DNA of 64,000 bases from Lepidodermella squamata (taxonomy: Eukaryota; Animalia; Gastrotricha), in the NCBI GenBank assembly GCA_047495785.1, contig JBLDXI010000054.1, forward strand, positions 2,356,001-2,420,000. The letters are read 5' to 3'. The notes beneath the pieces were generated by a model. The model saw only the letters and a program-made list of their open reading frames with translations. It was not told the origin of the DNA and did no database searches. Below, piece by piece: positions 4,674-64,000 of this stretch. Numbering within the stretch: the first letter of the stretch is position 1; each line of letters opens with the position of its first letter. Both the position numbers and the translations under genes were made by a program.

Positions 4674-7210
4674 CTATTCAAATGAGCGGAACATGATGCG
4701 TTTCACCCAATCAGAATAAGGCATAGCAATTCGTTTGATGATATTCGGCTGATTATACCAGTAACCGTCCTTCCTCGTCGCTGGAACTCGCCAATCGGCA
4801 CCGTAATGGCTCTGGATGTACGCCCCAGGGTTGCATGGGACCAGGAATAATTGGCCCAAGAAAAAAGCCGAGCACTGCGCAGTGCCATTGCGTGGAATTT
4901 CGTAATGTAACAAAAATTTTGCATGGTCATAAAATCCGAGAATGTAACTGTAGTTGACGCGCTGAAGGCTTCTAGATCGTTCGTCGTTTATGAAGAACGG
5001 AAAGACATCGATACCCGTGGTCTGCTTTTTTGGATCATTTTCACGGTGAACGTCAAAGCGAACCTCGACACCTGATGTGAGATCGCCGAAAATTCTTGCG
5101 ACCTTCATCACAAGAGATGACTCAGCATTGTTGATTGGCACCACGCGATATCTCATAGCTAATCGCTCCTGATATGCAACCTAAAGATTACAGAAAAAAT
5201 GTAGAAATTATTGAAGTGTGTCCAGAAATTTTTCAATCATTAAGAAATTGTAACATCACGTGGAATAAGAAAAATTAGACTAATGCAATTACTGCGCAAC
5301 TTGACGTCTATGAATGAACGAGCGGAAGCATGGCTGATTGCTATAGCTGTCATTTAAAAGCTGCTCCGACATGACGACTTACTGCCGAAGACCTAAGTCC
5401 GTTCAAATGAGCTTCAAGTCCTGTTAATCTGTTCCAATCAATTATGCTCGATCATGTGCAACCAGGTTGCAGGGGCGGGCTGTCACAAGTAATTCGAATC
5501 ATACTGAGAAAACGCCCGATAAATAGACGCAAATCTAACTGTTCTTATCACTTCACTACATTCGATCTTTCCAACTGTTTTGACCGATTTAAATCTCTAG
5601 AAATCATGTACGGAATCAGCTTTGCTGCACTCATCACGTTCTGCGTTTTTGCGCTCAACAATGGTTTCCCGATTCGCAAGGCGAAGGATGCTTACGGTGA
5701 GAACATTGTTCCTATCTACGTGATCAGCCAGAACCTGCATGGACCTGCTAAGCCGATTGAGTTGGTAGCCAATGGGTCGTCGAACGGCCCGAAAGTTGTA
5801 CTGCAGCAAAGCACTGCCCAAGTTCGAGCGCAGAAGCGATTCGCGCCCATGGATGATATGAACCCTTTACTCGCTACTTCGAATCAACTATTCGCTCCTG
5901 TTGGTGAGCAGGAAATGTTTGCCTCGCCGTTGGGAACAACTGGGTTCAAGCTGGCCTACCTTCATGGCGACATGGCTCCCTTGCAATCAAACGCGATGTT
6001 CCGCGAATAGCTTTACAAAAGCAACATGCTGTCATACTAGAGACAATCAATGAATCTTTTATCAAATATTCTGAAACCACACTACCCTCCTATAAGTCTT
6101 TAATATCATTGATTACAAATCACAAATAGGAAACAGGTTTTCTACAGTTTAAATCTAATCTAAGATAGTAAATACATTTTTCGAATAAAATTCCACCTTA
6201 ACAGCGTATATTTCTGTTACCTTGACTAAATTTGAGTAGAAAGACTTGTTTAAGGCCCAGCTTGGCACAGCTAGGTCCATATCGATATCACCAGGGATAA
6301 TTGAGCAGTTACGGTACCAACCCAACAGGGTACCGCCCTCCAAGCTCACCACCATTCCGTTCTGTTCGAAAAGCTCCCGAACTGCCCATGCATGGTCGGC
6401 AGCAAATGATGGCGTCTCCCCGTTCACGAAAACATCTCTCGGCCGTTGGATCGCATTTGGTTGTTGAAGTGGCGTGCAAGGAATGAAACGGCTATGCTTA
6501 TATAACTCATTCGCTGTTTTTGCACGCCACGACAGGCCGGCCTCGTCCAGTCGAAGTAGATCAGCTGATTTCCGAATACCTTTCAAGCCGGAGTTTCGAG
6601 ACAGAGTCCTACCCGAGAAAATTGATGCGCAAAGGCAGGGAGGGCAAGTTTCGGAGCTCAGAGTTTTTAACAGGAAGAAACGATCTGGAAGCCCGTAGCA
6701 AAAATAAAACCGCCTTAAAGAATTGCCAACGGAATGCAGTCTTGCGATGAGAATTGTCTGATTCGTCAGTGGAAGTTTTACGTAAATATGGCTCAGCCTA
6801 TCAATCCGAGAAGGTGCTTTCAGAATTCTAAGGCACGAGTTGCCTGAAAGCCCCTTTCCATCTTGCTTATAGCACAGAACGATTTCAGGGTTGAGATTGG
6901 TGTCAAGCAATGCAATTCGGCTGAATTCATCCAGCAAGGAGTTGTCATCCGGGACTCCGATAATCAAAAAATCGCGATCTTCGCCAAAAATCGTGGCGTT
7001 TGCCCATTCTCTGCTGATTGACGGTTTACCCAGGATGAAGACAGAACTTTTCGAATCCGAAATATTTGTGTAAGGAATTTCGTGAATGGAGATTACTGGC
7101 GTCTCGTGACACAATATTGGAAGGTTGATTTGCGAGCAAAGGAAGTAAAAAATCGCGGTTATGTTGATGGCGACCAGGCCCCAAAAAAGGCGCCTCGATT
7201 TGAATACCAT
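4674..7210 (-). CDS. LicD/fukutin-family phosphotransferase paralog 2, 2 exons
   Basis: Exons 7210-6221 and 5180-4674 join in frame (NLVK|VAYQERLAMRY). Motifs LEGGTLLGWYRNCSIIPGDIDMDL and LVPCNPGAYIQSHYGADWRVP. Intron 5181-6220. Confidence 0.9.
5606..6010 (+). CDS. Small secreted protein/possible peptide precursor nested antisense in the LicD-2 intron
   Basis: 134-aa ORF MYGISFAALITFCVFALNNG... with a signal-peptide-like start and RK/KR dibasic sites. ATG is preceded by TCTCTAG-AAATC. Composition is coding-like within an otherwise AT-rich intron. Confidence 0.6.
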   Translation: MYGISFAALITFCVFALNNGFPIRKAKDAYGENIVPIYVISQNLHGPAKPIELVANGSSNGPKVVLQQSTAQVRAQKRFAPMDDMNPLLATSNQLFAPVGEQEMFASPLGTTGFKLAYLHGDMAPLQSNAMFRE

Positions 7211-8694
7211 GCGATATGCTCATCTATCCATAAATGAAAAATCTATGATAGGTAAACAAAGGTAAGCATGCATTTTTACTAGAAGATTGTTGTTCCTCTC
7301 ATTCAGGTAAAAAGCGAGCATAATCGTAAAACTGCTGGCAGCAGCAAACATCCGATGAAACTACTGGCAGGAAATTATGCCTCATTATTTCAAATCCGAG
7401 CCGAGTAATAAACGCGTCATTACCTCCTAGGTACTCAAGTCAAGAGCCAAAGTAGGGTATTTTGGAGAGCTGCTATAATAATAACAACAAAATAATGCTA
7501 TTTTTAGATTATTAGAAATGTAGTAAACGGCAATTTCATGCTCAAGGCATTAGTGGCGGAAGAGTTTTCAGTTCCTGTTCTTACGATTTTATAGCGATTA
7601 TATCTTATAGATAAAACTATAATTTTACTGAAAAATTATTTGAAAAAAAAAGAATTTTTATGAGGGATTTGGAATTATAATATAAACGTTATATTATGGT
7701 AAAATACGGGGGCAAAGATAGGTATCTTTTAGGTAGCTGACGGCTCATGATTGCCAGCTGAGAAAATAAAGTAAATTATTTGCCGGAGAACGTGAATTGT
7801 TGCGCACGAATAAATGCTAATTAATTCATAGAGGAACGATATAGAATATAACAGCATCTTTACATCTTATATACCGAACTCCAAAACCGGTTTTTTTTTA
7901 ATTAAAATGTGCTACGCGATAGAGGCAAAACAGCTGCGGGCTATAAAATTGGGATGAGTAATTTTATTAGCCAAGAAATCATTTTCGGAATGGCTGCTCG
8001 TACATATTTTTGCTAGTCGTACATATATATTTCTAAAATATTTCTGTTGAACTTTACAATTATATCGATTAATCAATTTTGATCGCACATGTTCCAAATT
8101 TTAACCATATGTGCATCGAGGCGTGACCAGCCTCCCATCAAAGTTTGGCATGTGAATACCCATTATTAGCCACCCTGAAACATGAAATTACCCGAAGTCG
8201 GTAATGTCAGGAACCATAACCAATGGGCGGGTTTGCAGGTTTGTAGAACCCTGTTAAAGGCATTTGCCGTAAAAAAATAAACTAGCCAGGATTGAAATTG
8301 AGTAATTGGCTGAAATTCTAAATTTTCATTCGAATATATGTACGAGCAGCAAAAATCGCGTACATATATATGCACGAGCAGAGTCATGAAAGTCAGAGAG
8401 TACTATATGTCGAGCAAAGTAAAATAATTTTTTAAATTTATTTATAGAAAATTTTGTTAACTTTAAAATAATGATTTTATTTCGTGTTTAAAGAAAACTC
8501 AGTAATGAAGAAATAGGATGCGAAACTGGTTCAAAGGTAAACATTCGCTATGTATTGGTCACCTTTCCGGCCTTTGTTATAGCGACAAAGGAGAGGTATA
8601 CTGCGTTCTCCACTTAAAGCACGCCAGGATGTAATAATTAGCGTGATAGACCGAAAGGGGCGGCTTACTCTGTTCGATTCACAGATATATACTA

Positions 8695-9889: not shown

Positions 9890-12633
9890 TCACTTCCACG
9901 GCTCGTATTCAAAGCCCTGGTACATGATGCGTGACGACCAATCTGCAGCTGTTAAAACAACGCGCCTGACGATATTCGGCTGATTGCGCCAGTAGCCGTC
10001 TTGCCGGTCTTGCGGCGTGTTCCACCCGCGGCCGTAGTGCGCGATTAAATACGACTCGGGGTCGCATGGCACGAGGTAGATGTCGCCGAGGAAAATCGTC
10101 GAGCAGAGCGTGAGATTTTTCGGCAGTTCGTAGTGCAGCATAGCGTGCTCCCAGGTGACAAAGCCTTGTACGAAGTTGTAGTCGACGCCGGGCTTGGCAA
10201 TGTACAGGATGAATACGTCGATGCCGACGGTTTTCGACTTGTTGCGGCGAACGTCGAAGCGCACCTCGACGCCGTAGTCCAAATCGCCGAATACGCGCGT
10301 TGATTTCAGTTCGAGGTTTGAATTCGATGGCGCGTGAACGTATTGCTTTCGAAGAGATTTCTTTTCCTTATACGACATCTGGCAAATAAAAATAAAATAA
10401 AAATAAAAATCCACTTTAATATTTTCTTAAATAAAGCATAAAATATTGCAGGTTCTATAAATTTCACAAATTCGCGCTAAATTTATGTAATAAAATATTG
10501 TGGTAAATCTTCATCGAGCTCCAAATCGTTATTTGAAGGGATAGCGAAAATTTGAAGGGATAGCAATATCGATAACTGCGAAAATTCGAGCGAAAATTAA
10601 GGCGTTTCTCATAGCAAAGGTGAAAAACCCAAAAAATTTTCTAAATTTGAATTTTAAAATTTTAAAATTTCTGAATTTTCCAAATTCACTAAATTTTCTT
10701 GTATTTGCATTTTGCATTATAATGTTCCACAATGATTTACCCTGAGCTTCTGATTTTTTTTATACCTGGTAGCATCTTCAAGGTAAAAGAATTTTCAATG
10801 TTAGCTTCGATAGCTTCGATGAAAAAATCACTGATTTTTAAAATCGATATCGATACTTGGCAGGCCGCAGTATATCTCAACTGCCCGCTCATAGCGCAAA
10901 ATACGCGTAAAAGCAATATTTATCGGTTACACCCATATGCCGTTATAATAAAAAAGACTCTATAGGGAGATTCTAAGGAAGACTGGAACCTCGAAAAACC
11001 AGAGAATTTCGGAGAAATCTAGTGCTGGATGGAACCATACATTTAGGGTTTCTACTTGGCACGCCCATTGAAGCTCGATTTAGCGGGAGCAGAGTCCAAA
11101 AGGACATACCGTATTTTTTCCAATAGTAGCCCATCCACTAATAATAGCCCATCAGTAATAGTAGCCCAGGGTTAAGGACTCAAGTCGGTTCGAAAACATC
11201 AAAAATGAAAGATTCGGCGAAAATTATTTTTTGAAATTTTCGAAATTTTTAGGTTGAAATTTTAGTAGCCGGGCTGCTATAGGAACAAATAAGGTATTGG
11301 GAAATATGTTCTTTGAAATAAATTAAATGAAGCGGAAAATTATAGCTGCAAAATTGTGTGCTACACATGTACTTCTTTTTGGCCTTTCAGGTAATGGCAT
11401 TTCAGGTATCAATTTTGGTGCTCAAATTGTATCGATTTTAGCATGAATTTGGATGAATTTCAGGATCATCATCCAAAAAAATTCAAAATCAGAATAAAAA
11501 TCGCTAAGAAATTGGTCCAACTTTGATAGCCTAGAATTAGTTATTCGAACTGCTAATTAAAATTTAGTAATATTCACCCTAATTAAATCTTCATAAAATC
11601 GTTGATTGATCGCGAAACTCGGCAGGCTGAAATCGACATCAACGTCGTTCCAGATGACTGAGCAGTTGCGATACCAGCCAAGCAGCGTACCACCCTCCAG
11701 CGACAACGGCATTTCAGCCGATTCAAACAGCTCGCGAACCGCCCAGGAGTTCGGAGCGCCCAAGTCAGGCGAATCGCCGACGAGAAATACATCCCTAGGC
11801 CGCTGAACAGCGCCCTCCTCCTGCATTTTTAGGCATGGAATAAAACGGCTGTGCCTTAGACGCCGGTTCGCAAAATCTGACAGCCCATCGTTTGATGCAT
11901 ATATCGACGGTAAATTGAGATTTTTCGACAAAAATCTACCGCTGAATACTGACTCGCAAAGACAGGGCGGGCAGTCGTTATTACTCCAAGCAGCAGAATT
12001 AGTTAAATTGACGACATCCCGCGGCAATCCGTAGCAAAAATAGTAGTGATTATGCCGGTCAGGGGAGACAAGAAAAATTTGGGAAACCAGCAATGACGAG
12101 CCGTTATTATAGCTGATAAACAGGTGGCTGAAAGATGATTCGTTGAAAAATTTCGTCGAAACATTGTTGCGGCAAAACGCGCTTTGAAGGCCGCCGTTTT
12201 TACGGCTAGGATAACACGCGTATACAACAACGATTTTGCTTTCATTAATTGCTTGGAAAATCGATTCTAAGAATAACTTCCCATTTTGGCTGGTCGGGAC
12301 GATTCCGATTGTTGTGAAATGTTGATTGCCACCGAATATTGTAGACCCGTTCCAGGCTGGTAAAAGTGACGGCTTGCCTAAAGCGACTAAACCCAACCCG
12401 TCACGCCTGATTGATTTCCGCTTGTCATTCGCCGAATCTTCACTAACTTCGGCCGAAGACGAAAATGACAGGAGTGAATACCACGAAGTCGATTCGGAAA
12501 TGATGCTGATACCAGTGCTAGGATGGTCTTGGATTTGGTAGCTGACGAAATAACTCAGTAGGGTGAATAATAGGACGAAGATGATAACGGGGAGATAGGC
12601 GCGCCATTTCGGTGAAGCTAGGCCACTCGCCAT
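9890..12633 (-). CDS. LicD/fukutin-family phosphotransferase paralog 3, 2 exons
   Basis: Exons 12633-11578 and 10378-9890 (DLIR|MSYKEK). Motif LEGGTLLGWYRNCSVIWNDVDVDF; C-terminal half closely similar to paralog 1. Intron 10379-11577. Confidence 0.9.
11109..11294. mobile_element. Tc1/mariner (Tc2-like, CCGTA-ended) MITE, copy 1
   Basis: TA target duplications. TIRs CCGTATTTTTTCCAATAGTAGCCC and reverse complement CCTTATTTGTTCCTATAGCAGCCC. Lies in the LicD-3 intron. Confidence 0.75.
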
Positions 12634-15600
12634 TCAACAACGTTAAATTCTCGTCATTTCAAAGCGTTTTAAAAAATTATAAATCTATATCGAAAACACA
12701 AATCGCTATATATATACAGCGTGTCCCATAATTAACTCAAACTGAGAAAATTAACGGAAAAGGGTTCAGTAACTCTAACAGAGACGGGGTCATGTCTCAT
12801 AGCCAGAAAAATATTTCAAAAATGTAGATTGACATTTTTTGACATTTTGTCCAACCGGGTAAAATACCGAAAATTACCGAATCGGTTACGATCGGGATTT
12901 CCCGGGTTTTCTCCGGAATTTCTTCCGGAATTTCCTTGGTAAAAAATATAAAAAAAAATAATAATAAATGGAAGATTATCCCCGTATGTTCAATTACAAA
13001 AAGAATTCTGCAAAATTAAAAAAATTAAAAAAATCCTACTACACAAAATTTAAACTGAGTGAGAACTGCCGCCTTAAAATTTCGATAAAAGTTGAAATAT
13101 TAGGAATTTCAAAGCCATTAGTAATCTTCAGTTTGCTGCAATATCTAAAGGGGATTCAAATTTTAATATGTCATATAAATTCGGATATTATAATTCCTCA
13201 TAATTAATTTTATAATAATTAAAAAATCCTCCTTAATAATTTAGATTTAATCAAATTCGTACGTAATCATTTGAGTGAAATGTCTATTTTTCACGATTTA
13301 ATTAGCTCTATGATTGATGAGCCGAGGCGGCTGAATCAACATCACTGCTGATTACTGAGGATGGAGTGAAAAAATTGAATGCGAGATCAAGGGCATAAAG
13401 TCCTACACTAAAAAGCGTATCATGAAAACAAGCTCCCTACACGTAGTATGCAGGTAAATTAATGTAAGGACGCCGGTATACGTAGCAGTACAGGATGTAT
13501 TCACCGCTGTTCCGCGACGTGATCATAGTAATAATAGTAAAGGCTAAAAAAGACGAGGGAAAAATCATTATGAAAGGCAACTGCTCATCTCCCTGGCAAC
13601 GCTTGACGGAACTCACACCTTTGATATACACGCTCGAACGGAAAAATACCATCATTAAATAATGGGACGACAATGTTATTTTCGATTGCTATTTTCCCGC
13701 TAGTAAATAAATTTTTTATTAAAAATGAAGCAAAATTAATAGGGAGAATCAAAACACGCAAGAATCTTGTCTGAATAGAAATTAAATGCCACATACACCT
13801 ATGGGACTGAATATGATACTATAATGCATTGAGTAGAGGGAATAAATTAATGGCTATAGAAATAAATGAAAGGGTAATAAAGTCGTCAGCGGCCTTGCAG
13901 AGAAAAATGAACCTCCTTATCCCTTAGCAGGATCAGCAATGATGTCCCACCACATGTTACCTACGTCACCAAAGCTAACCGCAGTTAATTTATTACTGAT
14001 TTTTATTCTCTATAATTTATGTTGGGAAAAATCAAAAAACGGCAAAAAGAAGAGAAATCGAAGCTTGTTTTTTGACTTGATGAGCGAAGCAGCTAAATTT
14101 TGGAGTGAAAATTCACGCCTTATCAGAGTGAAGCGTCACCTCAGCTATAAGGCGGGTAAAATGCGGTATCCGATTTCAAACATCAATAAATGCGTTAGAT
14201 CACATTTTCGTGAGGTAACACCTTCTCCTGATAATGAGGATGTGATGGCGGTCGGCTGATGATGATGATGATCAATTTTTATTTGCAATGTCATCCCGCA
14301 CTTTCATTTTATTACACGGTGCGCTGCCGCCGCACGCTCTCGGCTGTAGGTCATCTCGGCGAAAAATCTGACCTCTGAAGACCTGAAAATTGATGTAAAA
14401 ACTCATGGGGAATATTACCGATTAAAATGAATAAATTTTTCGGCTCATGTTTTTCCCCTTGGAATTTTTTAATTCAATTTCACAAATATGTCCCACACGG
14501 CGACTGAACGTTTGTCAAATGAGGTCCCTACGAAGCATTTGCGGTGTCACTCTGAGGTACAGGGAATGATTATATAAGGGAAAAATGCGAAACTCAAAAA
14601 TTATCTTCGAGAGTAGCAAAAGACATCAACTTAGGTGGTACGGTCGTATGGACCCCGAACGGCTGACTCACCGAGAACGGTATTGGAACGTGCCGGAGGG
14701 TTAGAAACGGCCTAGAAGCAGGCCTAAGCTAAGGTGGCTCGACTGAATTAAGAAAAATTTAGAGGATGCCGATGATCTAGGGAAGGACAGAAAACAGTGG
14801 AGGCTGCAAATTCTGGGTTGATGAATCTGATACTTCTCGTGGGATTTTGTATATTTTGTTTCATTGATGGAAAATGATTTCGGTTTGACTAGGATCAGTC
14901 CCCTAGACTGGTCCTCCTCCGACACGCGCTCTGTTTGCCAGGTCAGCACCGTGACCTGTCCGGCAGGGTGTGTACACCGGAGTGATTTTTATTCTCAGCA
15001 CGCCTGTTTTTTTGAGCTGACGAATAAAGAAAATGCTATGATATGTTATGTTAATTTCACAAATAAATTCAGATATTTTCGAAGATCGCCAGGTTTCGAT
15101 TTCCGTTCATTTCCATTTCGAAATTCAGCGTCGCAGAACAAGGGTTCTCAAACACGTGTTACCAGTTTTTCTCAGATCTTTTCCCGACAACAATAACTCG
15201 TAGGTGGAAAAAAGAACACAACACAGCGGAAAAAGATAAGATAACGCCACACGCGCGACTGGCCGCGGGAAAAATTCATTTACTCGCGCTGTGCTGTTAT
15301 TAGGTAACTTGAATCTTGAATGGTATAACACTACGTAGTATAATTCAACGACACTATATACTCGTGTATTATTATAATGATTATGCACTTGTGTCTTGCC
15401 TTTTACCGCCCGCTCGCCTTTTTGCGATAGCCACCAGCCGGCTGCTTTTATTACCGTTCGAGCACTTGCGATTATCCGCCATTATTATTACCCACACATG
15501 AGATGTTTTTCCTACCAACATTCCTGTGTGTAAAAAGCTAACTCAGCACCTAAGCCGAATAATAAAAAAATGAATATGTTTGTTACGTTTAATTTCTTTT

Positions 15601-18580
15601 AAAATTGCCGCGTGATAACACCTGAGAAGTGATGAGCTGATGACTCATCACGTGCTCGCCATTCTCACCCCCGAGTACTTGAACCCTGCTGCTTTTATTC
15701 ATTCTCTTCTACAACGTGTTGATTGTAAGCGCTCAGTGCTGGGCTTATTTCCTCATTACAAATTTTATTGCTGTTGGGTTTTTTCTTCCATTCAATCAAT
15801 GCACGTGGCGATCAACTGGCATGCCTTGTTGTGGCACGCGTTCAAGTGACGATGCATTTCGATAAAATACAGCTTTATTTTTCGCCCGATTTTCTGCTGC
15901 GATTTTAGTGATGTTGGAATGTAGGCTTTTCATGTTCCGTTTTTTAAGGTGGTTCTCTGTTGTTTTATATCCAATATTTCCTTCACATCGCTGAACCCAT
16001 GTTACATTGTTACATTGAGCCAGAAAAATTAATCCATATTTTAGGTATTTTCTAGTATTGGCTACCTTTTTATTGTTGGTTTTGGGTACTAGGTATGCCT
16101 AGGTATTCGTAATACTATGATTATGTGTTGGCCTTTCAGGCTTTACCGCCACATGTCAGATTTATTGCGATTAATATCAATCAGTTCAGCCGGATACAAT
16201 ATCCGTAATACCTCGGAGTAATTTTTCCATGTTTTCGTGTGGAAGCAATCACTCTATAAGGACCGAAATGCTTCGAAGCTTCGTTTTATCCCTATCAGCG
16301 ATATATTTATCAAGTAACGAATTTCTTGGCTTTCATCGCGAATGTGAAATTTTTCAGTTATCCACGTGTAGATGTCCAAAATTATTGCGGTTTGTTTAGT
16401 ATTTTCAGCTTATTTTAAACAATGACGTTCTTGCAATAAGATGAACAATAAAAGCCTGATGTTCATCTACGAGATGCACCGAAAATCTAGGCTTTTATAC
16501 TGCTGACTGTCTACCGCGCAGTCGACCGCCTTTGTCTCATTTGCAATACTACTCGTTTTCGGTATTTTCCTACAGCAAAAGGAATGGATTATTTTCATGC
16601 TTCCAAGTAAGTGTCAGAGCGGAAATTCGACGATTAAGGAGGATTTTTGTATTTGATGACCTGAATTTTATTGCTTTTATTGCTGCGTGATGTTTCGCGA
16701 CCTAGAAAACACGTCGATATAATTATCGCCGCTTTATTATAACACCACGTAGTAATGAACAGCAAAAACACTGGCTTATTTCTTGCACTTACGAATGCGT
16801 TTAATGAGGCGGTCGAAAATCTTTACCACACGATTTTTCTTAGAATAAATTTCATATACTTGGCAGGCTGTTACTACTATGCGTCGTGGAAAAAATCGTA
16901 AGAATAAACAACGCACCCAGGCACGAGAGCAGTTAGAACGATACCTTGTTGGCTTGTAAAAGTGGCAGGTAAAGTGTTGGAATGTTTGCTGCCTGCCTTA
17001 GTCGTGGTTGTTTTCATTACCCTAATACTCACATTACTAGCCGTGTCGCTCGTCCTCTGCCTGCTATAGTATACACTCATCGACGGCAGTATTAACCCTA
17101 TGCCAGGCTCTGCTGTGTTGATAGTAAGGTAGTAGTAATCCTCATCATTATCGCCATTGCTTCATGCCTTGTACTGCCTTGTAATAGGCGGACGCCGTAA
17201 ACTGTGACATGGATCTGTACTATACTCGGCCATATAACGTTACCACGTGGTGTAACTTCCCTTGGCTTCTGTAGTGATAGATTACTATTAGTAGTAGTAA
17301 TATTAGAACAAATAGCTGGCCACTACTACTTGTTCCAGTAATAGCAGCCTCGCATCTTCTATGGGAGTGCTTTCTAGGCTATTCGGGCAAATTCGAGATA
17401 CTTATATTTTACAGTTCTTTTTGGAACTGGTAAAATTCACGCGTACTCTCGCTAGACCAGCCACTATTTTAGTTACTTAACCCTTCTGTAATTTTCTCGA
17501 TTTTTGGCATAGGTTGAAAAAATTGGAAAAGTCCTCCTTAATAAATTGTTAGCAAATTTCCCACTGTTCGCTAAATTGATTTTATCGCTTTAACAAGTGA
17601 AAAGCGGTGTTGGCCGAATTTTCTGAATTTCGCGAACAGGTTTCTGGCTTCAAATACGGCGAATCTTGGCTTTCCTAATTTAGTGCACCATCTCTCCTTG
17701 GATATTTTAAATTTTAAAAAGTTCGACCTCAAGAATGCTCTCATCCGCACCTTACTCATTCAGACGAACGCACAGGCGCTCTAAAAATTTATCCTAATTT
17801 TTAAATATTAAGCCTTGTCATAAATACCTCAACAGCATCGATAATAGCATTTAACAATAGCAATTTAATTTAGGTTGATGCGGTTTATTAGCTTGGGAAA
17901 AAACTGTGCGCGAACTTTCGTACCTTGCGCCGTAAACTTTGAACGCCATTTTCTCAACAACCCTGATGGCTATTATTTTCGTTTTGATATCGTTCGATTC
18001 CTCGTTAATTGATTAGTTGAATGTGACCCTTTCACTTGTTAATGGGTCAATTACACTCAAAAACTCATAGGGAAAGAACATTTTTGTTTAGATGATGACG
18101 TTGAAATTGCATCACCGCGTCGAATTGCTTGTTTTTCACGCTTGAAGACTTTTGTGTTAGATTTCACACACAACCCTGGTATAACCGCGCACTCACAAGG
18201 GATTAAAACTAGCCTCGCTTCCGTCCTAGTTGCGGCTAAGTAAACATGATCCATGGTACGTGAATGACGATCAAGAGCGGGATTACGCCACACCATGTGC
18301 AACATTACTGCGACAACCACACACACACATGTCGTGAATGTTCACGTGAAAAGTCGGCTCTTTGTTTACTTTACCGTCTAGTTTTTACCTGTCAGCACTT
18401 GTCTAGAAATTTATCCAAGTTCACGGACAGGATTATCAAATCTCGGACATAATTTTTATCCAAATTTTTCAAGATTTTTTGTAGAATTTTTCAAAGATTT
18501 TCCGCCCTTTTCCCGAGTTATTTTTCTGATAATTTTTATATACTTGTTGTTTAGATTTGTTGTTTGCCGTTTTATAAAAA

Positions 18581-39839: not shown

Positions 39840-39898
39840 CCTCGCATATTTTCGTTTGCTATATATAGAAATATTTTATTCTCTTGTGTTTCGGGAAA

Positions 39899-52092: not shown

Positions 52093-55000
52093 ATGTCTAA
52101 AACGCCGGGTTCTGCTGGCAATGTGAATAAGCCGTTTAAAAAGCCGACCATGGTCCAGGATTCACCTGTTATCCCATCGAAAAACACACTTCCTGCAGGT
52201 CGGCGGCCCATAGCACCCCCAGCTAAGGCGCCGTCTGCTCTAGCGAGGCAAGAAATGCCCCCTCCACCAGTTCCTAGCCGAGATGTTGCCTCCCCGTCGC
52301 AAAATCGGTCTGAAAATCAGCCACCTCATCACCAAATCGCTGTATCGAAAAAATCGGATGATAATCAGAAGATTACTAGTCAAAACAACCGAGCGAAAGA
52401 GCGAGAAATCATGCCCCCTCCACCTCCTCCAGCTCAAATTTTGTCGCAGCAAATGACCCCATCAGTCAGACGACGCCAATCCGCTATCAATATCGACGTT
52501 CCACCGCCGATTGGCGCCTGGAAATCGAATACAAAAGTCGGGAAGGCTGTTTTCGAGTGCGGCGTGACGTTGTACCCGGATCGCCAAACTGAATGCGCAG
52601 TCGAGGGCAGTTTATTCCGCCGTGAATTTGCGAAAAAAATCGCGTCTGGCGAAATTTTGGTCGATGAAGTTGTGGCGTTCACGGAAGATTTCATCCAAGA
52701 TCGAACTCAGTTACTTCAAGCGTTAACTCCGTCGATTTTGCTGCGAAATGACGAAGATGGTGACAACGATGCGTCTCACCCGGAACAGCAGCACAGCTTT
52801 TTGCGGTTGTTACTCAGCGTCGAGGCGTTGCAGCAAGATATTTCTGATACTTTGCTGCTGAAATTGATTGATATTGCTGATCCGAATAACAGTACCTACA
52901 ACGCGGCGTTGGTTGGTGTTGATTTGCCGTTCATGATTGTATCTCAGTTCAAATGGCTCGAGCACATTGCGAGGCCGGATAAAATGATTGCCTCATTTCT
53001 CGACGCGATCTCACTAGATGACCGCAAGGTAACTAATTTTCTGCTTTTTTTCTTGTAAATTTTAATGAGAATTTTAACAATGCTTAATATTTTGAAATTA
53101 TTTTGTGAACATGTAAAAAAATATTTCATTTGAAAATATTGGAAAATATTTCTACGGTTCTACTATATTTGCGCAAGCATACCTATCAAGACATTTGAAG
53201 GGAAATTCCGTGAGTGTGTACTAATTTATCGATCCCTGTTGCATACAACAGGTATACAGGCATACAACTGTATAATAGGTAACTGATTGTTGCACAGATT
53301 AAAGTAGATAATCGCCCTAAATGGCATAGTTATTTAGAAAATTCGGCGCGCGTCATATAATTTGTCAGTGATCAGTGCTAAGAGCGATAAAATTCATTCA
53401 TTTCTATCATTTCCATAGAAGTGGAATATGACGACACGGAGAAGACGCAAATAAATCATAGCCGTTATTCACGTGAACAAAAACAAGCTATAAATAGATC
53501 GGAAAAATGCCGATTGGACGGTGATAAAGTGCACATGGAAAAGATGTCGTATAGGCGTATCTTGGTCTAAGTCTACGTTTATTTACACAAGTTCAAAGGT
53601 TATTACACCTTGAAATGATTATCCACACTGTTAACGACCACACTTGGTTTGGAGATAGGCGAGCTATTCACGAACGAAGTGATAAAGATGAGAAAATGAG
53701 CTTCTTATGTTCCATCCCTGATATTTCACATGTTATATCATGTCACATAACCTTTATGTGCCGGCTGCCAACCCTATATCCTTTTAACATGAATAAAGCA
53801 AAAGATAAGAGTGTAAATTCTATACATGAGGACTTTCTGTCTTATTATTCTGACTTATACTTCAGAATACAGAAACTTACAGAAGTGAGCATACTCTCTA
53901 TTCCACCTTCATCTTGTAAACTCATTCAACCCCTCATATAATTGTACATCTCAGTATTGCTTACGCTTAATGCATTGATTTTTACCATAGAAGTTGCGCG
54001 CTTATATAACAAATTTTAGTATTATAAACTACAACGCATAGTTTTCTTTGGGAAATGGATAACGAGACGAGACAACAGTTGGCAGAATTGGAAAGATTAT
54101 TGAAGAGTCAACATGAAAACGAAGAAACCGTCAAAGTTAATGTGATAACGGCTGGTCACACAGGTGTAGGCAAGTCCACGTTAATAAACGCCATATTCGG
54201 CTCCAAAGTAGCTCTTACCTCTGGCTGCAAACCGATGACGCAAGGTATTGAAGAACACGTGCTTGGACCTATGCACTTTTTCGACACGAAAGGGCTGGAG
54301 TTAGCAACCTGCAAAGTAATCAAGGAACAACTGATAACGCACATTCGCAAAAGGAACAGCAGTAAGGATGCCAACGAGCATATGCACATCGCATATTACT
54401 GCATTGATGAGCAAGGATGTCGATTGCAGGATATGGATAAAGATATAATACAGACGATGGTCGATGAAGGGGTAGTAGTAATAATGGTGGTAACAAAGTC
54501 ATTTAGCGATGAGGAGACGGAGCTATCAAAATCATTAGTGAAACATTTCCCCTCTTTGACGTTGGTTCGAGTTAACAGCTTGGACAAGAAAATGAGGGGC
54601 GACTGCATTATTCCACCTTATGGCGTTGACATAGTAGTACAAGAGACGGCAAAATGCATTCCTGAAGCCCAACAGATCGCTTTCGTTGCGGCACAGGTAG
54701 CTTGCGTTAAGAGCAAAAAATTCGCATGTGGACTTATTATCGCTGCATCTTGTACTGCCGCAGGTGCATTTGCTGCCACGCCGATACCGTTTCTGGATTT
54801 GGCTGCAACGCCTCCTGCGATAATGGCAATGTTCGCATCGATGAATGAGGTTTTTGATGTGCAAATGGATGTAAAGTCAAACTTCCAACTATTTAAAGGC
54901 ATTATTTTTAGTTATTTTTCATCCTCAGGGGCGCGGCTTACTGCGTTGCTTGTTGGTGAAGTATTACAACTTATTCCGGGGCTAGGTAGTATTTTGGGGG

Positions 55001-58000
55001 GTGCTATAACAGGTTCAACAGTGTTAGCAACAGTCGCTGTAATTGGCAACAATTACTTGCAGTCTCTTATTGAAACTTACATTGAAAACAACAGGAGTCC
55101 GCCATCTGCAGATGCTGTTATAGCACGCTTTCAACGTCACTGGGAAGACGTAAATAAAGTTAAGAATGAAGGGCAAACATAATTGGAGTGAGTTGAATAC
55201 TAAACTGTATGATTGTGTTGATATTTATGGCTTGCAACTACCTATTCTGTTGTGAACATTGATTTACCTGCATCTGCATTCTCCTCTTCCTTTCGAACAA
55301 AACCACATGATATTGATTTCAGAAAATGATAACCCATATTTGACGATGAATAAAGGGATGAACTATAATTACTTGCGAAGATTAACTGACGCGAAAATTA
55401 ATAAAATAAGAGAAAAATTAGAAATGTTTCTTATCATTTAAAAAAGTTCTTGCTAAAGTGTCTTATCAGTTTCAAAGGTTGCTATACATTTCTATAATAA
55501 TAATATGGATGATCAGTTTTTGTGTGTAAATACTGCAGGGGCGGCGCCCTGGCCAGAATGTGTGTAATTGCTTAGGTCGAAAAGTATTGCAGCCCGCTAA
55601 CCGCTGTAAGCAGTCCATGCATTTCTGATATACCGCACCCTGCAAAATGTCCGGATCTTTCGGCAATATAATGCAACAACAAAATTCGACGAGTCAGCTA
55701 TTTTTTTACTTTTTTGAAATGTTCCGAAAACTTGGTACCTAATTATCGAAAATAATGCAGCATTTACAAATATAAATTAACTGACATTTTTAGAATTATC
55801 CTACAAAAGCGCGGAATATTTAAAATTTAGATTATAATTTTTCAGGTAATCAGTAAAGAGCTTATTTCAGCTCTTCCTGAAATTTTCGGCGACGCCCAGC
55901 ACCCTCAAATCGTGGAAAAATTGCGGCATCTCCTCGACGACCCTAGATCACCCTACCTCGCCGATGTTCTCGATACATTTTCCAACCTAAATCTCGAACC
56001 AGAAATCGTCGAACGGCTTCGATTGAAAACTCTAGACGCCGTCAAGGCAATGCGAGTAGAAAACATCCCAGCCGCCTTAAAATTCGTGCTATCAACTGTC
56101 ACGGCTGAAAACGCGTTCGAGCTCGTTGGGCGGGTTCGAAATCAGTTGGAACATATCGACGATGAAGACTACTGCTCAACGTTTTCAAACGAACAAATTC
56201 AGTCTCTATTCAAGTTGGTCTTTCACGAAATTAAGGCGGCTTTACTGCTGAATAGTTGCCAGCTGAGTAATTGGACGAAAATGTACACGCAACAGCCGCC
56301 GCCTGGTACGCCGGATGAAATCCTGCATGGCACCTACGAAATTCACCCGTTTGATTTTTCAATGCTGGTCATTCTGCACGCGATTTCGTTCCGCAAAAAG
56401 GCGATTGAAACCGTGTTGAAAACGCGTCGCCGAGCTGGCTTGTTGACTGACAAAACGATTCAGCACGCGTTCAAGCGCTACCACGAGGTGATGGGTGAGC
56501 ATTTGCGGTCTGTCGTGGCGATTGCGGATTCGTGCGTTCGCAATACGGACAACACGATTTGCTCGCTTGGCCGGCTGGTCTACACGCAGGCGTTTTGCGA
56601 ATTCGACAACATTTGCGTCCGGCAAGATATTGTTGCCAATTTGGTCACTCACGTGTTCTCATTGCCTATAGGGTAGGTCAAATTTATAATATTTAACTAA
56701 AATGTATCCTCCTTAAAAATTTGAAAGGGAAAATCGTACGCCGGTACCAATTTTCATTTGATTCAATACCTAACCGTTTTATTCGTTATTCAAGTGGTTA
56801 GGGTTAGGGTTGAAGGCTGGGTTTTAAAATTTGGGATTTGGAACTGATTGTTTGGAGATAATTTGGTACTGAATTCAATAATTTTGTAATGATTTCACTA
56901 AATCCCATTGGAAATCCCTCAGCGTCTTATAAAATGTTGAATTACTAGCGACATTTCTCACCTCAGAATACCCCAGAAAATATCGACTGAGTGTAAGAAA
57001 TTTCTTTCTGAAATTTTTCCGATTATTGATTGATACACAAATTCGAAGTTTTCCAGCGCGCATTTTCTAGAATTCGCATTTTTTTCTTTTAAACAATTGA
57101 AAGTGATTTTGTTCCTTTTAATTTATACAAAATATTTCCCTGATATTTTACAAAAATTTATATGACTGATTTTTATTTAAAAAATACATCTAATGAGTGC
57201 TTAACTTTACTTCCCTTTTGAGTAATTTTTTCGCAAATAATGAATCAAGTATATGGGACCATAGAGATCAGATTTAATCTTATCCCCATGTATGGGACAC
57301 AGGTACGGGAAATACTGTAATAATAGTTCAAAAAGAGCTCCGAAGCCTTCAAAACACGCTCGTGTGCTCACTCCGCACGTGAGCATTTGATCGATTTCAT
57401 GAAATCCGAGCATTCTCTATAGTAGCAATATGGTAATGATACTCAGGTTTTTGCCGCTTATAAGAAGATAGATATTCTGTACTTGACGAAACCCCCTTAG
57501 TATTTGAAATGAACCGACCAATTTTACACTGTCTAGTCCATAACGAGAAAAATAACTTGGCATTTAAATGTGTTTAATCAGTTACAAGCATATTTATTTT
57601 AAGAAATTTACGCAAATTTGTAGTTTCTGACGCAAAATCGTGTAGCTGCTGATGCAACACATCATAATTTATTTACACACCGTCCTAGCGTGTAATTTTT
57701 TTCGGTGATTCACAGGGCTCGTAAATAATTTGTTTCTTATCTGCAGGTCCTCAAACTGTGCAATGGATATACTACTGGCTCTATCAGAAGAACGGCCCGA
57801 ATTGCTGGTTTCATTCCGCGTTTTCGTCCGAAACATGCTCGACGTTCTCGATAACTTGCAGCTTACCGATGTCCGAAAACTGTACCGAATTCTGGCAAAT
57901 CTCGCCTTTGCCGATTCAGTGACGCTGTCAAGCAACGAACGCGGCCGATTCAAAGACGACTTGTACATGATAATTCGTAAACAACTCGCATTTACCGGGC

Positions 58001-61000
58001 CTGAGAACGCGAAATTCCGCCAATTCGGCGTGCTAGCCGCCGCGATGCTAGCCCGCGGCATCGGCCAATGGGCCAAACGCAACCCGGACGAAGACGGTAC
58101 GAATTCAACCGTCGACCAGCCATCGACCAGTTCCGGGTCTGGGATTTCGAACGAAATCACCGAATTATTCCACCTGGTTCAACGATCCGTGACGTCAACT
58201 GACCCGAATAAAGCCCGGGACGTGACTTCGCTCGGTCTTTTCTACGATGAGCTGTCGATTTTGGTGAGATCAGGGTGTCTACCGGTTGATACGGTCGCCT
58301 GGTTGTCGGAGCAGCTGCCGAATATGTTTGTCAAAGATTTTCTCAACGAATCGACGCCCCAGGTCAAAATCGATAAATTAGTCTCGCAGGACCAGTTTGC
58401 ATTGGGCGAGGAAGAGTACCAGGCGATTATGATTTTTCCAGTCGCGGCCGGTGCCATTGTTCAACCGAACCGAAAAACTGCCGATATCTACCACCTGTGC
58501 CCGTTATTTCGCCTTCTCGCCTGCTGCTGCGAGGTGATCAATGGCGGAATCGATATTCTAGGCAGTCAACTCGTTTGCCCGATTAATTTCCCGGCTTTGA
58601 AGGCGCTGTCTCGATTAAGGAAGATGAAAGTTATGTCGCTGAATGAGCAGTACGCGGTTTGCGAGGCCCTACTCGCCCTGGTTAACTGGTTTCGCGAGAC
58701 CCTGTCCATCTATGGCCGGTCACCTGATCACGAAATCCGGGGTCATTGTTTGAAACGACTCCACGATTTGATCCCGATCGCGACTGAGCTGGAGGAATAT
58801 CACAAATCCTGCCCGAGTTGGGTGCCTCGTTATATTACCTCTTCGGTTTTTACCAGTCAATCAACCGGGGGTCGCGGGAGGCCGGCCGGGGCGAAACCCG
58901 CGAAATCGGGTAAAACCGGGGCGAAAAAACCGAAATTGGCCGCAGTCCCGACTCAACCCCTCGGCACCCAAGTCGCTGGGACCCAGGGTGTCGGGTTGAC
59001 CCAGGCTGGCCATAGCACGTCGACGTCAATCACAAATTTTACTGTCATGTCGAAATTCCGCATCGCCTTTCGTGAGTTGAGTTTGGAATCATTGCAGTTG
59101 ATTGCCGGCGATCTCGGGTTGAAAGAAGCTAGTTCGTCCCTGCTTCAAATGTCAGCCTCATCCGCTAATTCGACCTTCTCCTCAGTTTTCACACCCCTCG
59201 AGGCGTTGTACCTGGTCGAAGATTTGATTGATAAGTTGAAGTACAAGCTTATCAGGGCGGGTTCAAAGGCGTTCGGCGCGTTTGCTGGGTCGAATTTTTC
59301 GGGTCAAACCTCGGAAATTGTTCACCGGTCTTTGGACGAAAAATCGCTGGATGAAGTCCTTGAAACTATTGTCGACCTAGTCGGGCCAATGTGTAGCCTC
59401 GCCCAGGGTTGTTTTGCTATGGTCAGGCAGGTTTTGGACGAATCTGATGGGATGGTTGAAAGGCTGGACGAACGAGCTGAATGGACGTCTGGCCTTCGGT
59501 TGTACGGGCTCATTTTCGACTGTTTCGGCATGTTGCTGGTCAACGTGCCGACTCTGAAGCCGGATTTGACGAAGCGACTTGTTTTCAACATTGCGAATTC
59601 GCCGGTTTCGAACGGCGATGAAATTTCGCATACGCCATCGGCTAATACGGACTATATTAGTGAGGCGTTCAAGTTTTTGGCCCAATTTTCGCCGTGTCTA
59701 CCGACTCTACTCATCTCTGGGTCTTACTTGAAGATGATGGAGGCGTTGCTGGCTCTTTGCAAGCGAGGAACACCGGTTCGATCAAATTTATCGACCAGAA
59801 TTTGTGAGTCATTTATTAAATTAGATTTGATTTAAATTTATTATTTTATTAAATTTTTAAGCTGGATTTTTTATTTGTTAAATTTTTAATTATTGACTTA
59901 AATATCTTTTTATTTATATTTATTTTCAGATGAAATCTGCGAATCGCTCCTGAAAAGTGACTGGACTGATGCGGAAACTGAGCCCGGTTGTTCGTCCTAT
60001 AAAGTTATTTCGCAAATTTTCCAAGCTTATCTCATCTACAACCCTGAAAAACTGCACGATTCACTGCGCGAATTTCTCGACGGCCCTGTCGGCGAGTTGA
60101 CCGGCCCCGGAGCTGGTAGAGACACGGTTTCAACGCGTTTCCGCAGTCTTTCAAGGTAATGTTTTTGTTGAAATTTATTATTCCTTTTATTTAATGTCAA
60201 TTTTCAGAAAAACTTTCCCGGCTTTTTACGAAGTGATGTTGACTCAGCTGATTCGGCTAGCCCAGACCACGCCGTCGCGTATAGCCGACGATGACGACGA
60301 TGAGACGAGTTCGCAGGGCAGCCAGGCGCAGCGTAGTCAGGCGTTATTCCCGCCGCAAAACTCGACCACTGATCTCGGATTTTTATCACAGCGCCACCAC
60401 ATGGTACCAGACGGCCAGAAATTCGGCTATCGCGAGTTGTTGCAAGCTTGGGACGATCTCGGCTGTGTTTTTCGCGACACGGTTGAACTAGTCCGAGTTT
60501 TCAGCGGCCGTAGTTGCCTAGTTTCAGTCATTAAGGTAGATTTTTTTCAAATCAGAAAATTCCTCCTTAAAAATTATATTTTTTTCAGCATGGGCGTAAT
60601 TTTTTGGAAATTTTTGCGAAACGTGGTATGCCGTTGTTGGACGTTGCTTTCAAGGGCAATCAAACGCAAGTTCGCGAGATTTTGTCCGTTGTTCAGAAGG
60701 GTACGCGAGTGCTTCACATCGTTTGCTCTGAGTCGAAAGCGCACAAAGACGTGGCTGTAATTTCGATGGTGCCGCGGTTGAAGAAAACGCTCGAGTGCTT
60801 CATTTACCGCGTCAAGCAAATGCTGACGGTTAACGGGTGCCTTGAAGCGTTTTTTTGCGGTGTCTTGAAGTCGAGAAATATCAAGGGTGAAGAAATTTCG
60901 TCGCAAAATCCGTACAAGCCTGAGGAGGACGAGGAAGATGAGGGCGACGAAGAATCGAAGCCGAAATCGAAGGGTAAAAAGCGAAAAAGTGAGGCGAAAC

Positions 61001-61473
61001 CGAAAAAATCTTCTAAGAAATCGAAGGGTGGGGAAGATGGGGAAGGAGACGAAGCCGAAGAGGGCGAAGAAGAGTCCGGCCCGGGCGAAGACGAGGTTTG
61101 CTATTTTTTACATCTCTCCATCTTCAAATCAAAAAATCTTTTTTTTTCTCGAATTTTGAAATTTTTCACGCTTTTACAATATTTTAAGGAGGATGGCGAG
61201 ACATTGGGTGAGGAAGATACAGAAAATGAAGATGAAGACGAAAATACTGTCACTGAGGGTAGTGATAATGACGATGAAACACCCGATTCGGTTGAATACG
61301 AGTCAGTTCGATCGACCACGTCGTCGGTAGCCCGGCAGAAGAAGAAACCGGTTAAACGTCACTCTTACAGTACGGCCTATGATGAAGATGAAGAAACTGA
61401 AGATGTTGATGACGGCAATGAAGAAGCCGATGACGATGAGGAAGTCGAAGAATACGAAGAAGACGATGAATGA
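52093..61473 (+). CDS. FANCD2: Fanconi anemia group D2 protein, 7 exons
   Basis: Exons 52093-53028, 55846-56672, 57747-59803, 59930-60155, 60208-60535, 60589-61095, 61189-61473. Motifs ISALPEIFGDAQH, DDLYMIIRKQL (monoubiquitinated Lys motif), LVNWFRE and VPRLKKTLE..NGCLEAFFCGVLKSRNIKGEEI; acidic tail. Confidence 0.93.
54003..54028 (+). promoter_or_regulatory. Candidate TATA boxes upstream of nested GTPase
   Basis: TATATAA near 54003 and TATAAA near 54023, 30-50 nt before ATG 54055. The context is AT-rich, so support is weak. Confidence 0.3.
54055..55182 (+). CDS. Bacterial-type Era/YcjF-like GTPase with DUF697-like C-terminus, nested in FANCD2 intron 1
   Basis: Intact, intronless 375-aa ORF. 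G1 GHTGVGKSTLINAIFG, G2 PMTQ, G3 DTKGLE, HIAYYCI, G4 TKS, AFVAAQ, ATPIPFLD and Gly-rich hydrophobic IPGLGSILGGAI. Confidence 0.85.
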   Translation: MDNETRQQLAELERLLKSQHENEETVKVNVITAGHTGVGKSTLINAIFGSKVALTSGCKPMTQGIEEHVLGPMHFFDTKGLELATCKVIKEQLITHIRKRNSSKDANEHMHIAYYCIDEQGCRLQDMDKDIIQTMVDEGVVVIMVVTKSFSDEETELSKSLVKHFPSLTLVRVNSLDKKMRGDCIIPPYGVDIVVQETAKCIPEAQQIAFVAAQVACVKSKKFACGLIIAASCTAAGAFAATPIPFLDLAATPPAIMAMFASMNEVFDVQMDVKSNFQLFKGIIFSYFSSSGARLTALLVGEVLQLIPGLGSILGGAITGSTVLATVAVIGNNYLQSLIETYIENNRSPPSADAVIARFQRHWEDVNKVKNEGQT

Positions 61474-61765: not shown

Positions 61766-64000
61766 ATGGACCCAGAAGATGATGCCGATATGGATACTGA
61801 TATGGATGAAAACGACGGCTCTTTCAATGACTACTACACTAATGATGATTATGGTATTAACCTTTTTTCAAATTTGTAATTTAATTTGTAATTTTTTTAA
61901 CTAATTAATTGAATTTCAATTTTTAATGAAAATTAGTTTCTTTATTTTCTTTGATTTTTCTCTAATTTTCTTTGATTTTTTTAATTTTTTAGATGAGGTT
62001 GCTTCTACTGAAATAATCCCACAAGAGAAGGACATCGAAGCATTCGATGCGAAACGCCTCGAGAAAGCCGATGTCGTGCAATTGGTAACAAACGCCGTGA
62101 AAGACCTAACTGCCACCCTTTCAATCTCCCCCTCATTCGCTAAACTACTGCTGTACCTGCTATCGTGGGACAAGGCCGCTATTGTCTCTCGATTCACCTC
62201 AAACCGCCTTAAATTCCTCGAAGAATGCCGGCTAAGACCTGACCAAAACGCCGCGAATCCGCAGATTTTGATGCAGAGCAAACAACCGTGCCCGGTCTGC
62301 CTCGACCCGGCTACCCAGGGCCATTTAGACCCGGCCAACGACAGCTGTAACCACGCGTTCTGCGCAACATGTTGGGGCGAGCATTTTCGAATTCAAATGA
62401 CGTCATCGGGGTCTATCGAGATCGAATGCATGGCCGATGGGTGCCGCGTCCTCATGCTTGAAGACTTCATTCTACGCCACTTGCCGAGCCAAAACGAACG
62501 CAGCGAGTATTCAGATATAGTTTTCAAATCGCTATGCCGGCGAAATCCGATGCTGAGCCGATGCCCGGGTGGGAATTGTTCGGCTATCTACTCGACCTCG
62601 GAAACGTCCGAGCGGTTGAATAACTCGAGTCTAGGTCGGGTTATCTGCGAGCTGTGCTCGACTAAATTTTGTTTTCGATGCTGTGCCGACTACCACGCGC
62701 CGACTTCATGCCGCGATATCGCCATGTGGCTGCTGAAATGTCGCGACGAGTCAGAAACGCTGAACTACCTGCGTGCGAATACGAAGGACTGCCCGAAATG
62801 TGCGGCGATTATTGAGAAGAACGGCGGGTGTAATCACATGAGTTGTACGCGGTGTAAGCACAACTTTTGCTGGGTGTGCCTCGGCGACTGGCAGGCGCAT
62901 AACAATTCGTACGAGTGCAACCGTTACCGCCCGTCCGAGGCGACGGATGGCAATGTTGCGCGAGAGGCGCTACTGCGGTATTTGTTCTATTTCGAGCGCT
63001 GGGACAACCACTCGAGGTCGCTAGCGAAGGAGGCGGCGATGCTGGAGAGGATTGATAAGCGAATTGATGAGCTGATCAGTATGGGCGACCAGGGTACGTG
63101 GATCGACTGGCGGCCGGTTCGCGAGGCGACTGCGGGGCTGCTGCGGGCGCGCTACACTTTACAATACACCTACCCTCATGCATATCTTCTCAAGGTAAAA
63201 TTACAAAATTGACATTTTCAGTAGTTTCTAGCTTGAATTGTTTTAATTCGGTACAATTTTTCAAAATTTTCCAAGATTAGGGGCTTAGTTACTCAACTTC
63301 TCTAAAATATGGTTTATAGCTTTTAATCCTTTGAATCTCAATTTTCATCTGACCTAACCGATATATCCCATTATCATGCATCTTTTGCGCTATTACAAGT
63401 TACAGATTACAAGTTGGACTTCAGCCTACTTGGCCGATATCGATTTTTTAAATCAGTGATTTTTCCGATATCAGCAGTCTTGGAAGCCAACAATGAAAAA
63501 TATTTTACATACCTTATGGTACCAGGTAGCTAAAATATTTGAGAGAAGTATTTGAAACTTGAAAGAATGATCGGGAAAAGTTGGTGCTGGAGCCTCAATT
63601 TTATACGAAGACAAATTAGTTGGACCCTTATTTTTCACTAGTGGCTAGAATCGCTCTGCTAGGGATTTTAACTTTCCCTTATTTTTGGCCATTTTTCTTG
63701 CTGAATCCTAATTATTTAGTGGAATCCACCTTAATAGTGCTAATAATCAGCATTAAGTAGCCTTCGTAACTGGGAACTCCCATGCTTATTTTCTCTTTTT
63801 TATTGATCGAATATTTATTCGATTTATTGACCACATTTTATTAATTTTACATAATTTTACCCAGGATGACACTGTAAAGGCGCTATTCGAAAACAGTCAA
63901 GCTAGACTGGAACTCGAGGTCGAAAACCTGTCGCACTTGCTGGAGCGTTTCGATTTCGGAGACCGCGCTTCCATCGTCGCGAAAGCTACTATTGTCGAGA
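61766..64000 (+). CDS. ARIH2: Ariadne-2 RBR E3 ubiquitin ligase, 3'-partial
   Basis: Exons 61766-61853, 61993-63194, 63865 to window end. Acidic N-terminus, RING1-IBR-RING2 (TKDCPKCAAIIEKNGGCNHMSC), AREALLRYLFYFERWDNH, GTWIDW and ARLELEVENLS. Confidence 0.92.

Follow-up and report, generated by a model that had tools for sequence, protein, structure and literature searches.

The gastrotrich Lepidodermella squamata carries, on both strands of a single 64-kb window of its genome (the whole stretch analysed here; contig JBLDXI010000054.1 of assembly GCA_047495785.1, positions 2,356,001 to 2,420,000), many exact copies of the nine-letter word TTAAGGHGG, in which H stands for A, C or T, at about 20 times the frequency expected by chance. 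We propose, at a probability of roughly 55%, that TTAAGGHGG is a lineage-specific recognition word of a putative abundant, sequence-specific double-strand DNA-binding protein, and that its copies are kept by selection or by a bias in repair or gene conversion. The evidence was drawn from this one window and from one relative, a related species known solely from ENA metagenome contigs, of which 21 kb of sequence match the window.

TTAAGGHGG is strongly over-represented and sharply defined

Searching both strands of the window with the exact-match pattern TTAAGGNGG gave 29 matches, 14 on the plus strand and 15 on the minus strand, corresponding to approximately one copy per 2.2 kb. In dinucleotide-preserving shuffles the same pattern matched 1.53 times on average (sd 1.3, maximum 6), and none of 100 shuffles reached 29. 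The variable base was A, C or T at 9, 10 and 10 sites, respectively, and each of these three variants exceeded its expectation of 0.26-1.5 copies under Markov models of order 1-5; chance or base composition as the cause of the excess is thus ruled out by the shuffles and the Markov models. G was never found at the variable position (0 of 29 sites, P ~0.001 by arithmetic given a G frequency of 0.21; the G-substituted form is TTAAGGGGG), and no other word as long as TTAAGGHGG was strongly over-represented in this stretch. An earlier sequence-only reading of this stretch had listed 28 matches against a chance expectation of about 2. All 28 of its coordinates are exact, a 29th copy at 50717 on the plus strand had been missed, and its chance estimate, its remark that the variable base is never G and its placing of copies on both strands agree with our counts. 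Enrichment under a higher-order Markov model, a check which that reading had suggested, holds in the window up to order 5.

The word is not an assembly artefact, since contigs of an independent 2024 DNA run (X2) cover the sites at 36405, 36956, 37056, 39154 and 40696 with no difference reported within the word. At 40696 the word is intact in X2 although X2 differs at three places within the 16 nt upstream. The published L. squamata assembly comprises 122 Mb with a GC content of 43% (PMC11660948), and a whole genome at the density of our window would, by extrapolation, hold roughly 55,000 copies.

The core of the word is very sharply defined. Each of the 24 single-base variants at the eight fixed positions occurs 0-5 times in the window, compared with 29 times for the word itself. 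When up to one mismatch is allowed there are 65 sites, including the 29 exact ones, against 34.5 expected, and the one-mismatch class taken by itself (36 sites versus ~33 expected) is at background. The six near-matches noted in the sequence-only reading all exist as one-mismatch sites, but the class to which they belong is not enriched. As there is no halo of decayed copies, some process must be keeping the copies exact, and the sharp specificity, together with the exclusion of G from the free position, points to direct readout of the bases and to active maintenance.

Outside the core the context is weak. A or T predominates at the three bases upstream, the base that follows is A in 17 of the 29 sites, and T stands at each of the six positions after that in 15-19 of the sites, as the earlier remark that many copies continue ATTTT had indicated. 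A mild A-richness extends ~70 nt upstream and a mild T-richness ~50 nt downstream. Over the 80 nt to each side of the core, positional information nowhere exceeds the 99.9% null level, and neither this measure nor k-mer contrast revealed a partner motif near the word.

Copies are placed at random, in coding and non-coding DNA alike

At least 12 of the 29 copies are intronic, in host introns of 53 nt to 1.3 kb; seven fall within coding exons, some on the strand of the gene and others on the opposite one, one lies in a 3' untranslated region (UTR), and the remaining nine are in non-coding DNA. With respect to the host gene, ~18 copies are sense and 11 antisense, which is not a significant departure from equality (two-sided P ~0.27 by arithmetic); for the nine non-coding sites, the strand relative to the gene was taken from neighbouring open frames. 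Neighbouring sites are 100 to 6359 nt apart, and the coefficient of variation of these gaps is 0.88, compared with 0.95 for random placement. The figure of ~2 kb is therefore a mean spacing, placement is random and there is no period, so the earlier description of a signal spaced every ~2 kb has to be abandoned. Two pairs of sites, 13069/13228 (same orientation) and 56072/56231 (inverted), are each separated by exactly 159 nt, a shared distance that is probably a coincidence (rough chance estimate ~9%).

To the extent that the window can be aligned to the relative, its conserved coding blocks (13.8 kb, GC 0.52) contain 5 sites versus 0.20 expected, and the remaining 22.1 kb (GC 0.38) contain 15 versus 0.43 expected; coding and non-coding DNA thus show enrichment of a comparable order. 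Examination of the window for insulator-like or architectural behaviour likewise revealed no border preference and no regular spacing, with exons, introns, the 3' UTR and intergenic DNA similarly enriched.

Copies arise in place within this lineage

Contig L004 of the relative (146-20605) is fully collinear in gene order with positions 28095-64000 of the window (~36 kb), the window being ~1.75 times longer. The shared order is a Scm-like MBT/SLED gene, an RYBP-like gene, a minus-strand gene, a kinase-SAM gene, an unnamed gene, FANCD2 and ARIH2, and the ARIH2 of the relative is 62% identical to that of the window. The exact word does not occur in the relative's 21 kb, where near-matches are at background, and the matching stretch of the window has 20 copies. 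Nor did the 21 kb yield an equivalent word, the top k-mers being either copies of a box C/D small nucleolar RNA (snoRNA) or weak candidates with 5 copies, among them ACCTGGTA, found at exon-intron junctions. The introns at ~33985-35236, 44342-44835, 45160-46458, 56674-57750 and 63222-63861 have no counterpart in the relative. A scan of JGI metagenomes for further relatives returned a 33%-identical ARIH2 as its sole match, and the proteins of the window had no entries in the protein collection searched.

The exonic copies at 56072, 56231 and 62204 align with the relative codon for codon and without gaps. The relative shares the peptide Pro-Ala-Ala-Leu-Lys-Phe at 56072, where the word has been created purely by synonymous codons; the copy at 62204 occupies residues that vary among animals. 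At 60562, a 53-nt intron of the window holds a copy, and the orthologous intron of the relative, 66 nt in length, holds none. All-against-all BLAST of 150-nt flanks on each side of the word identified a single true homologous pair, 44438/46396, which belongs to a duplicated intron block of ~130 nt; the other matches reflected physical overlap between adjacent sites or low-complexity sequence, and control sets gave 0-3 pairs. Because the exonic copies align gap-free with a relative that lacks the word, one of them by way of synonymous codons, the copies must have arisen in place by substitution, within this lineage.

A putative recognition word of an abundant DNA-binding protein

The recognition word that we propose would act at the level of DNA, independently of the direction of transcription, the reading frame and the gene feature in which it lies. 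Its copies are not inserted; point substitution creates them on the spot, after which they would be actively held exact. This maintenance could take either of two forms: each bound site may help the genome, for example as an anchor of chromatin organisation (or in replication or cohesion), or repair or gene conversion may favour the word. Random placement, equal enrichment in exons and the density of sites incline us towards a process that is indifferent to position. The enrichment of the word, its sharpness, its in-place origin, its lineage specificity and its indifference to strand and coding status are shown by the data. We infer from them that some protein almost certainly reads the word, and likewise what its binding would do; at a guess, this reader may be a zinc-coordinating protein of C2H2 or THAP type. 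The sequence-only reading had also suggested a DNA-level signal bound by a protein, and this part of it fits the orientation independence, the equal coding and non-coding enrichment, the sharpness and the lineage specificity of the word. The regular spacing that accompanied it is refuted, and the insulator, condensin or pairing role is still a guess, since the sites show no link with the borders of genes or domains.

Among animal motifs, those of CTCF and BEAF-32 and the Zelda motif CAGGTAG, which zinc-finger-type proteins read, resemble TTAAGGHGG in being short and in occurring in either orientation at many genomic sites. Those motifs are concentrated at promoters, enhancers and borders, tolerate degenerate variants and are far rarer per kb, whereas TTAAGGHGG occurs about once per 2.2 kb at random positions, with coding exons equally enriched and variants unenriched. 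THAP proteins are only a lead, suggested by a partial match to published binding sites. The THAP sites of the Drosophila P-element transposase, TAAGTGTA, TAAGTGGA and TAAGGGTT (PMC3698922), and the further site GTTAAGTGGA (bioRxiv 10.1101/2021.02.01.429122) set an A/T-rich TAA beside a G-rich part, as the word does, and the THAP core (TAAG[T/G]G or TNNGGGCA) has TAAGG in common with it. The next base, the sixth of the published sites, is G in them and never G here. The P-element sites also lie just inside the ends of the element, whereas copies of the word are solitary in unique DNA.

Several considerations weigh against a recognition word maintained in this way. The evidence covers 64 kb. We know of no animal transcription-factor or insulator motif that occurs about once per 2.2 kb without a preference for promoters or borders. 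Because the downstream T-richness is greater at sites sense to the gene (T 0.45 versus 0.33), the T-rich and A-rich context of the word may partly reflect intron composition. Finally, a genome that kept tens of thousands of sites by selection would carry a heavy load, so that the variant in which repair or conversion maintains the copies is favoured over the variant in which each site is functional. Among the papers in the library searched, none contained the degenerate word, and the exact strings turned up solely in primers and unrelated contexts, and the term 'motif' is absent from the L. squamata genome paper (PMC11660948).

Possible molecular drive without host function

A possible, although doubtful, alternative is that the word owes its abundance to molecular drive and has no function for the host. 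The word would be favoured at some sequence-specific step, either of gene conversion or of the repair of double-strand breaks; a bound protein may, for instance, shield an allele from breaks, so that heterozygous sites are converted to the word and the word spreads through the whole genome as bacterial uptake sequences do. This explanation has a protein reader in common with the recognition word and differs solely in why the copies persist. Driven words, bacterial uptake sequences among them, are marked statistically by random placement, tolerance of coding sequence, lack of a halo and lineage specificity. The random placement of the L. squamata copies, their near-equal enrichment in coding and non-coding DNA, their creation through synonymous codons or at tolerant residues, the missing one-mismatch halo and the absence of the word from the collinear relative are accordingly all in keeping with drive. 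On the other side, we know of no such system in animals, and reproduction in this species, probably largely by parthenogenesis, would limit meiotic drive, but not mitotic conversion between homologues. The fullest form of the idea, a self-propagating animal DNA word that spreads by point substitution through protein-biased repair or conversion to perhaps 50,000 places, genes included, and brings no host benefit, we consider unlikely.

The closest statistical parallels are the bacterial uptake signal sequence (USS) of Haemophilus, the DNA uptake sequence (DUS) of Neisseria and Chi. These are, like TTAAGGHGG, sharp words of 8-10 letters that are strongly over-represented at about one per 1-5 kb, common in coding sequence via codon choice and lineage-specific; USS and DUS also occur on both strands, and the flanks of USS are AT-rich. 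Like such driven or selected words, TTAAGGHGG is sharp, strongly over-represented and similarly enriched in coding sequence. The readers of the bacterial words belong to DNA-uptake or RecBCD-type machinery, of which animals have none. The likeness is statistical, not mechanistic. Chi additionally has a replication-linked strand skew, for the assessment of which 64 kb are too short here.

RNA-level and transposon explanations

It is improbable that the word serves as the individual promoter or terminator of many small non-coding RNAs, in the manner of the motif upstream of nematode 21U piRNAs (the Ruby motif), with the T-run as spacer or terminator. The copies are dispersed and solitary, lie on both strands and often in introns, and are often followed by a T-run; the Ruby motif is likewise sharp (8 letters), present on both strands and solitary, with thousands of copies in introns and intergenic DNA of AT-rich context. 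That motif, however, stands at a fixed distance from the start of its small RNA and avoids exons. In the window, by contrast, the absence of any significant position within 80 nt on either side of the word speaks against a fixed start site, and conserved coding exons are as enriched as other DNA. Rfam and tRNA scans of the window found no known RNA genes, either at the word sites or elsewhere in it, and the piRNAs of L. squamata have been described as conventional cluster-derived, ping-pong piRNAs (PMC6468455).

Still less probable is an element acting in pre-mRNA, be it a splicing enhancer within introns or the site of an RNA-binding protein. The intronic position of at least 12 of the copies, several of them in very short introns, and the slight excess of sense copies (18:11) would suit such an element, but the excess is not significant, both orientations occur within one intron (36405 on the plus strand, 36956 and 37056 on the minus strand), and the word is also found in intergenic DNA, in one 3' UTR and, on both strands, in coding exons. 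The proposal of the sequence-only reading that the copies are relic termini of a TTAA-targeting Kolobok-type transposon, widened here to piggyBac types, miniature inverted-repeat elements and excision footprints, has in its favour that the word starts with TTAA, but is contradicted by flanks that share no homology beyond the word (save the one duplicated intron block), by the absence of decayed copies and by the lack of any insertion relative to orthologous codons, and it is further at odds with copies within 53-61-nt introns and with the position of the only close inverted pair, 56072/56231, in a conserved FANCD2 exon.

Locations of the 29 copies

All sites given here are exact matches, and intron limits were taken from splice-site reading, RNA joints, homology or synteny, as stated; the joints come from X1, an RNA-like run in contig form. 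TTAAGGTGG at 6193-6201 (minus) lies in what splice sites indicate to be a 61-nt intron of a minus-strand LicD-like gene, in the sense orientation, and TTAAGGCGG at 6710-6718 (minus), also sense, in a probable coding exon (open frame 6158-7219; Leu-Arg-Arg). AT-rich non-coding DNA contains TTAAGGCGG at 13069-13077 (minus) and TTAAGGAGG at 13228-13236 (minus). Further non-coding copies are TTAAGGTGG at 15944-15952 (plus), TTAAGGAGG at 16634-16642 (plus; intronic in appearance), TTAAGGAGG at 17533-17541 (minus) and TTAAGGCGG at 23227-23235 (plus). According to splice-site reading, TTAAGGCGG at 27274-27282 (plus) and TTAAGGAGG at 32391-32399 (plus; directly ahead of the MBT exon) are sense copies in introns of ~55 and ~57 nt, and these two short introns, as well as the 53-nt intron at 60562, had been recognised correctly before.

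The Scm-like MBT/SLED gene contains TTAAGGTGG at 33728-33736 (minus), antisense in a coding exon (codons Ser-Thr-Leu-Thr). Three copies in both orientations share one 1035-nt intron at 36063-37097 (RNA joint 36062>37098), namely TTAAGGTGG at 36405-36413 (plus, sense), TTAAGGCGG at 36956-36964 (minus, antisense) and TTAAGGTGG at 37056-37064 (minus, antisense), and TTAAGGAGG at 37398-37406 (minus, antisense) is in the 3' UTR of the Scm-like gene, 17 nt past the stop codon. Downstream, TTAAGGCGG at 39154-39162 (plus) is a sense copy in a 397-nt intron, 38859-39255 (RNA joint 38858>39256), and TTAAGGTGG at 40696-40704 (plus) is non-coding, between convergent genes and ~70 nt past an open frame ending at 40625. 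Another non-coding copy, TTAAGGTGG at 43198-43206 (plus), precedes the kinase open frame by ~180 nt. Two introns without counterpart in the relative contain the duplicated block, with TTAAGGTGG at 44438-44446 (plus; kinase-SAM gene intron ~44342-44835) and TTAAGGTGG at 46396-46404 (plus; intron ~45160-46458).

TTAAGGCGG at 50717-50725 (plus) is a sense copy in a coding exon (open frame 50056-51168; codons Val-Lys-Ala-Ala), and TTAAGGAGG at 51396-51404 (minus) is intergenic, between the unnamed gene and FANCD2. One FANCD2 coding exon holds TTAAGGCGG twice, at 56072-56080 (minus, antisense) and at 56231-56239 (plus, sense), where Ile-Lys-Ala-Ala corresponds to Leu-Lys-Ser-Ser in the relative. 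The other copies in FANCD2 are TTAAGGAGG at 56708-56716 (minus, antisense; intron ~56674-57750, without counterpart in the relative), TTAAGGAGG at 60562-60570 (minus, antisense; the 53-nt intron 60536-60588) and TTAAGGAGG at 61184-61192 (plus, sense; in the weakly conserved C-terminal coding part). ARIH2 (ariadne-2) carries TTAAGGCGG at 62204-62212 (minus), antisense in a coding exon, and TTAAGGTGG at 63726-63734 (minus), antisense in an intron (~63222-63861) without counterpart in the relative.

Other features of the window

A 2.8-kb FANCD2 intron at 53038-55842 hosts an intact bacterial-type GTPase-DUF697 gene (54055-55182) and contains no copy of the word. The FANCD2 codons that flank this intron are contiguous in the relative (L004 ~14478-14489), and the intron with its nested gene is therefore lineage-specific. 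Between the kinase-SAM gene and the next gene, the window has 2.8 kb (47281-50094) where the relative has ~30-70 nt; this stretch, which may be an insertion, includes a minus-strand open frame (48082-48471), and no copy of the word was found in it. In the relative, many copies of the box C/D snoRNA (a TGATGA box, a shared guide, then CTGA) lie downstream of ARIH2 (L001 11700-12500; L003 3100-6600), the snoRNA host gene being next after ARIH2.

One RNA contig (38468-40528) covers the RYBP-like open frame at 39285-39839 and part of a second open frame at 40167-40625. X1 and X2 both have one extra A behind position 40420, where the window probably has a one-base homopolymer error. On either side of the LicD-like gene are paralogous minus-strand genes without Pfam matches (2183-5156 and 9890-12633), which are ~70% identical in their common segments (2709-2936 versus 11567-11794, and 4675-4774 versus 9906-10005). 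The open frame 26006-26440 has a weak match to the three-finger, Ly6-type domain Toxin_TOLIP, and a cysteine-rich segment is repeated at 26347, 27616 and 28295, which suggests that Ly6/uPAR-like genes form a small tandem family in 26006-28330. Seven copies of the octamer CGACCCGG or its complement lie in 50210-50781, within one GC-rich exon (open frame 50056-51168); this repetition reflects a repetitive peptide, and the gene, which has no Pfam matches, is conserved in position in the relative.

Significance

This analysis adds to what had been noticed in the stretch the comparison with a collinear relative, the evidence that the copies originate in place, the missing decay halo and the figures for coding and non-coding DNA. 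Whatever maintains it, the word is a handy signature for separating resident DNA of the species from contaminant or recently acquired DNA. If TTAAGGHGG is a binding site, then a very abundant and so far unrecognised DNA-binding factor would mark the whole genome about every 2 kb, within and between genes, in a barely studied phylum. If the word is instead kept by a bias in conversion or repair, it would be, to our knowledge, the first animal case of a short word spreading by drive. Such a word would parallel, in an animal, the uptake and Chi-type words of bacteria, and would allow repair bias to be approached directly in a small species that probably has little sex.

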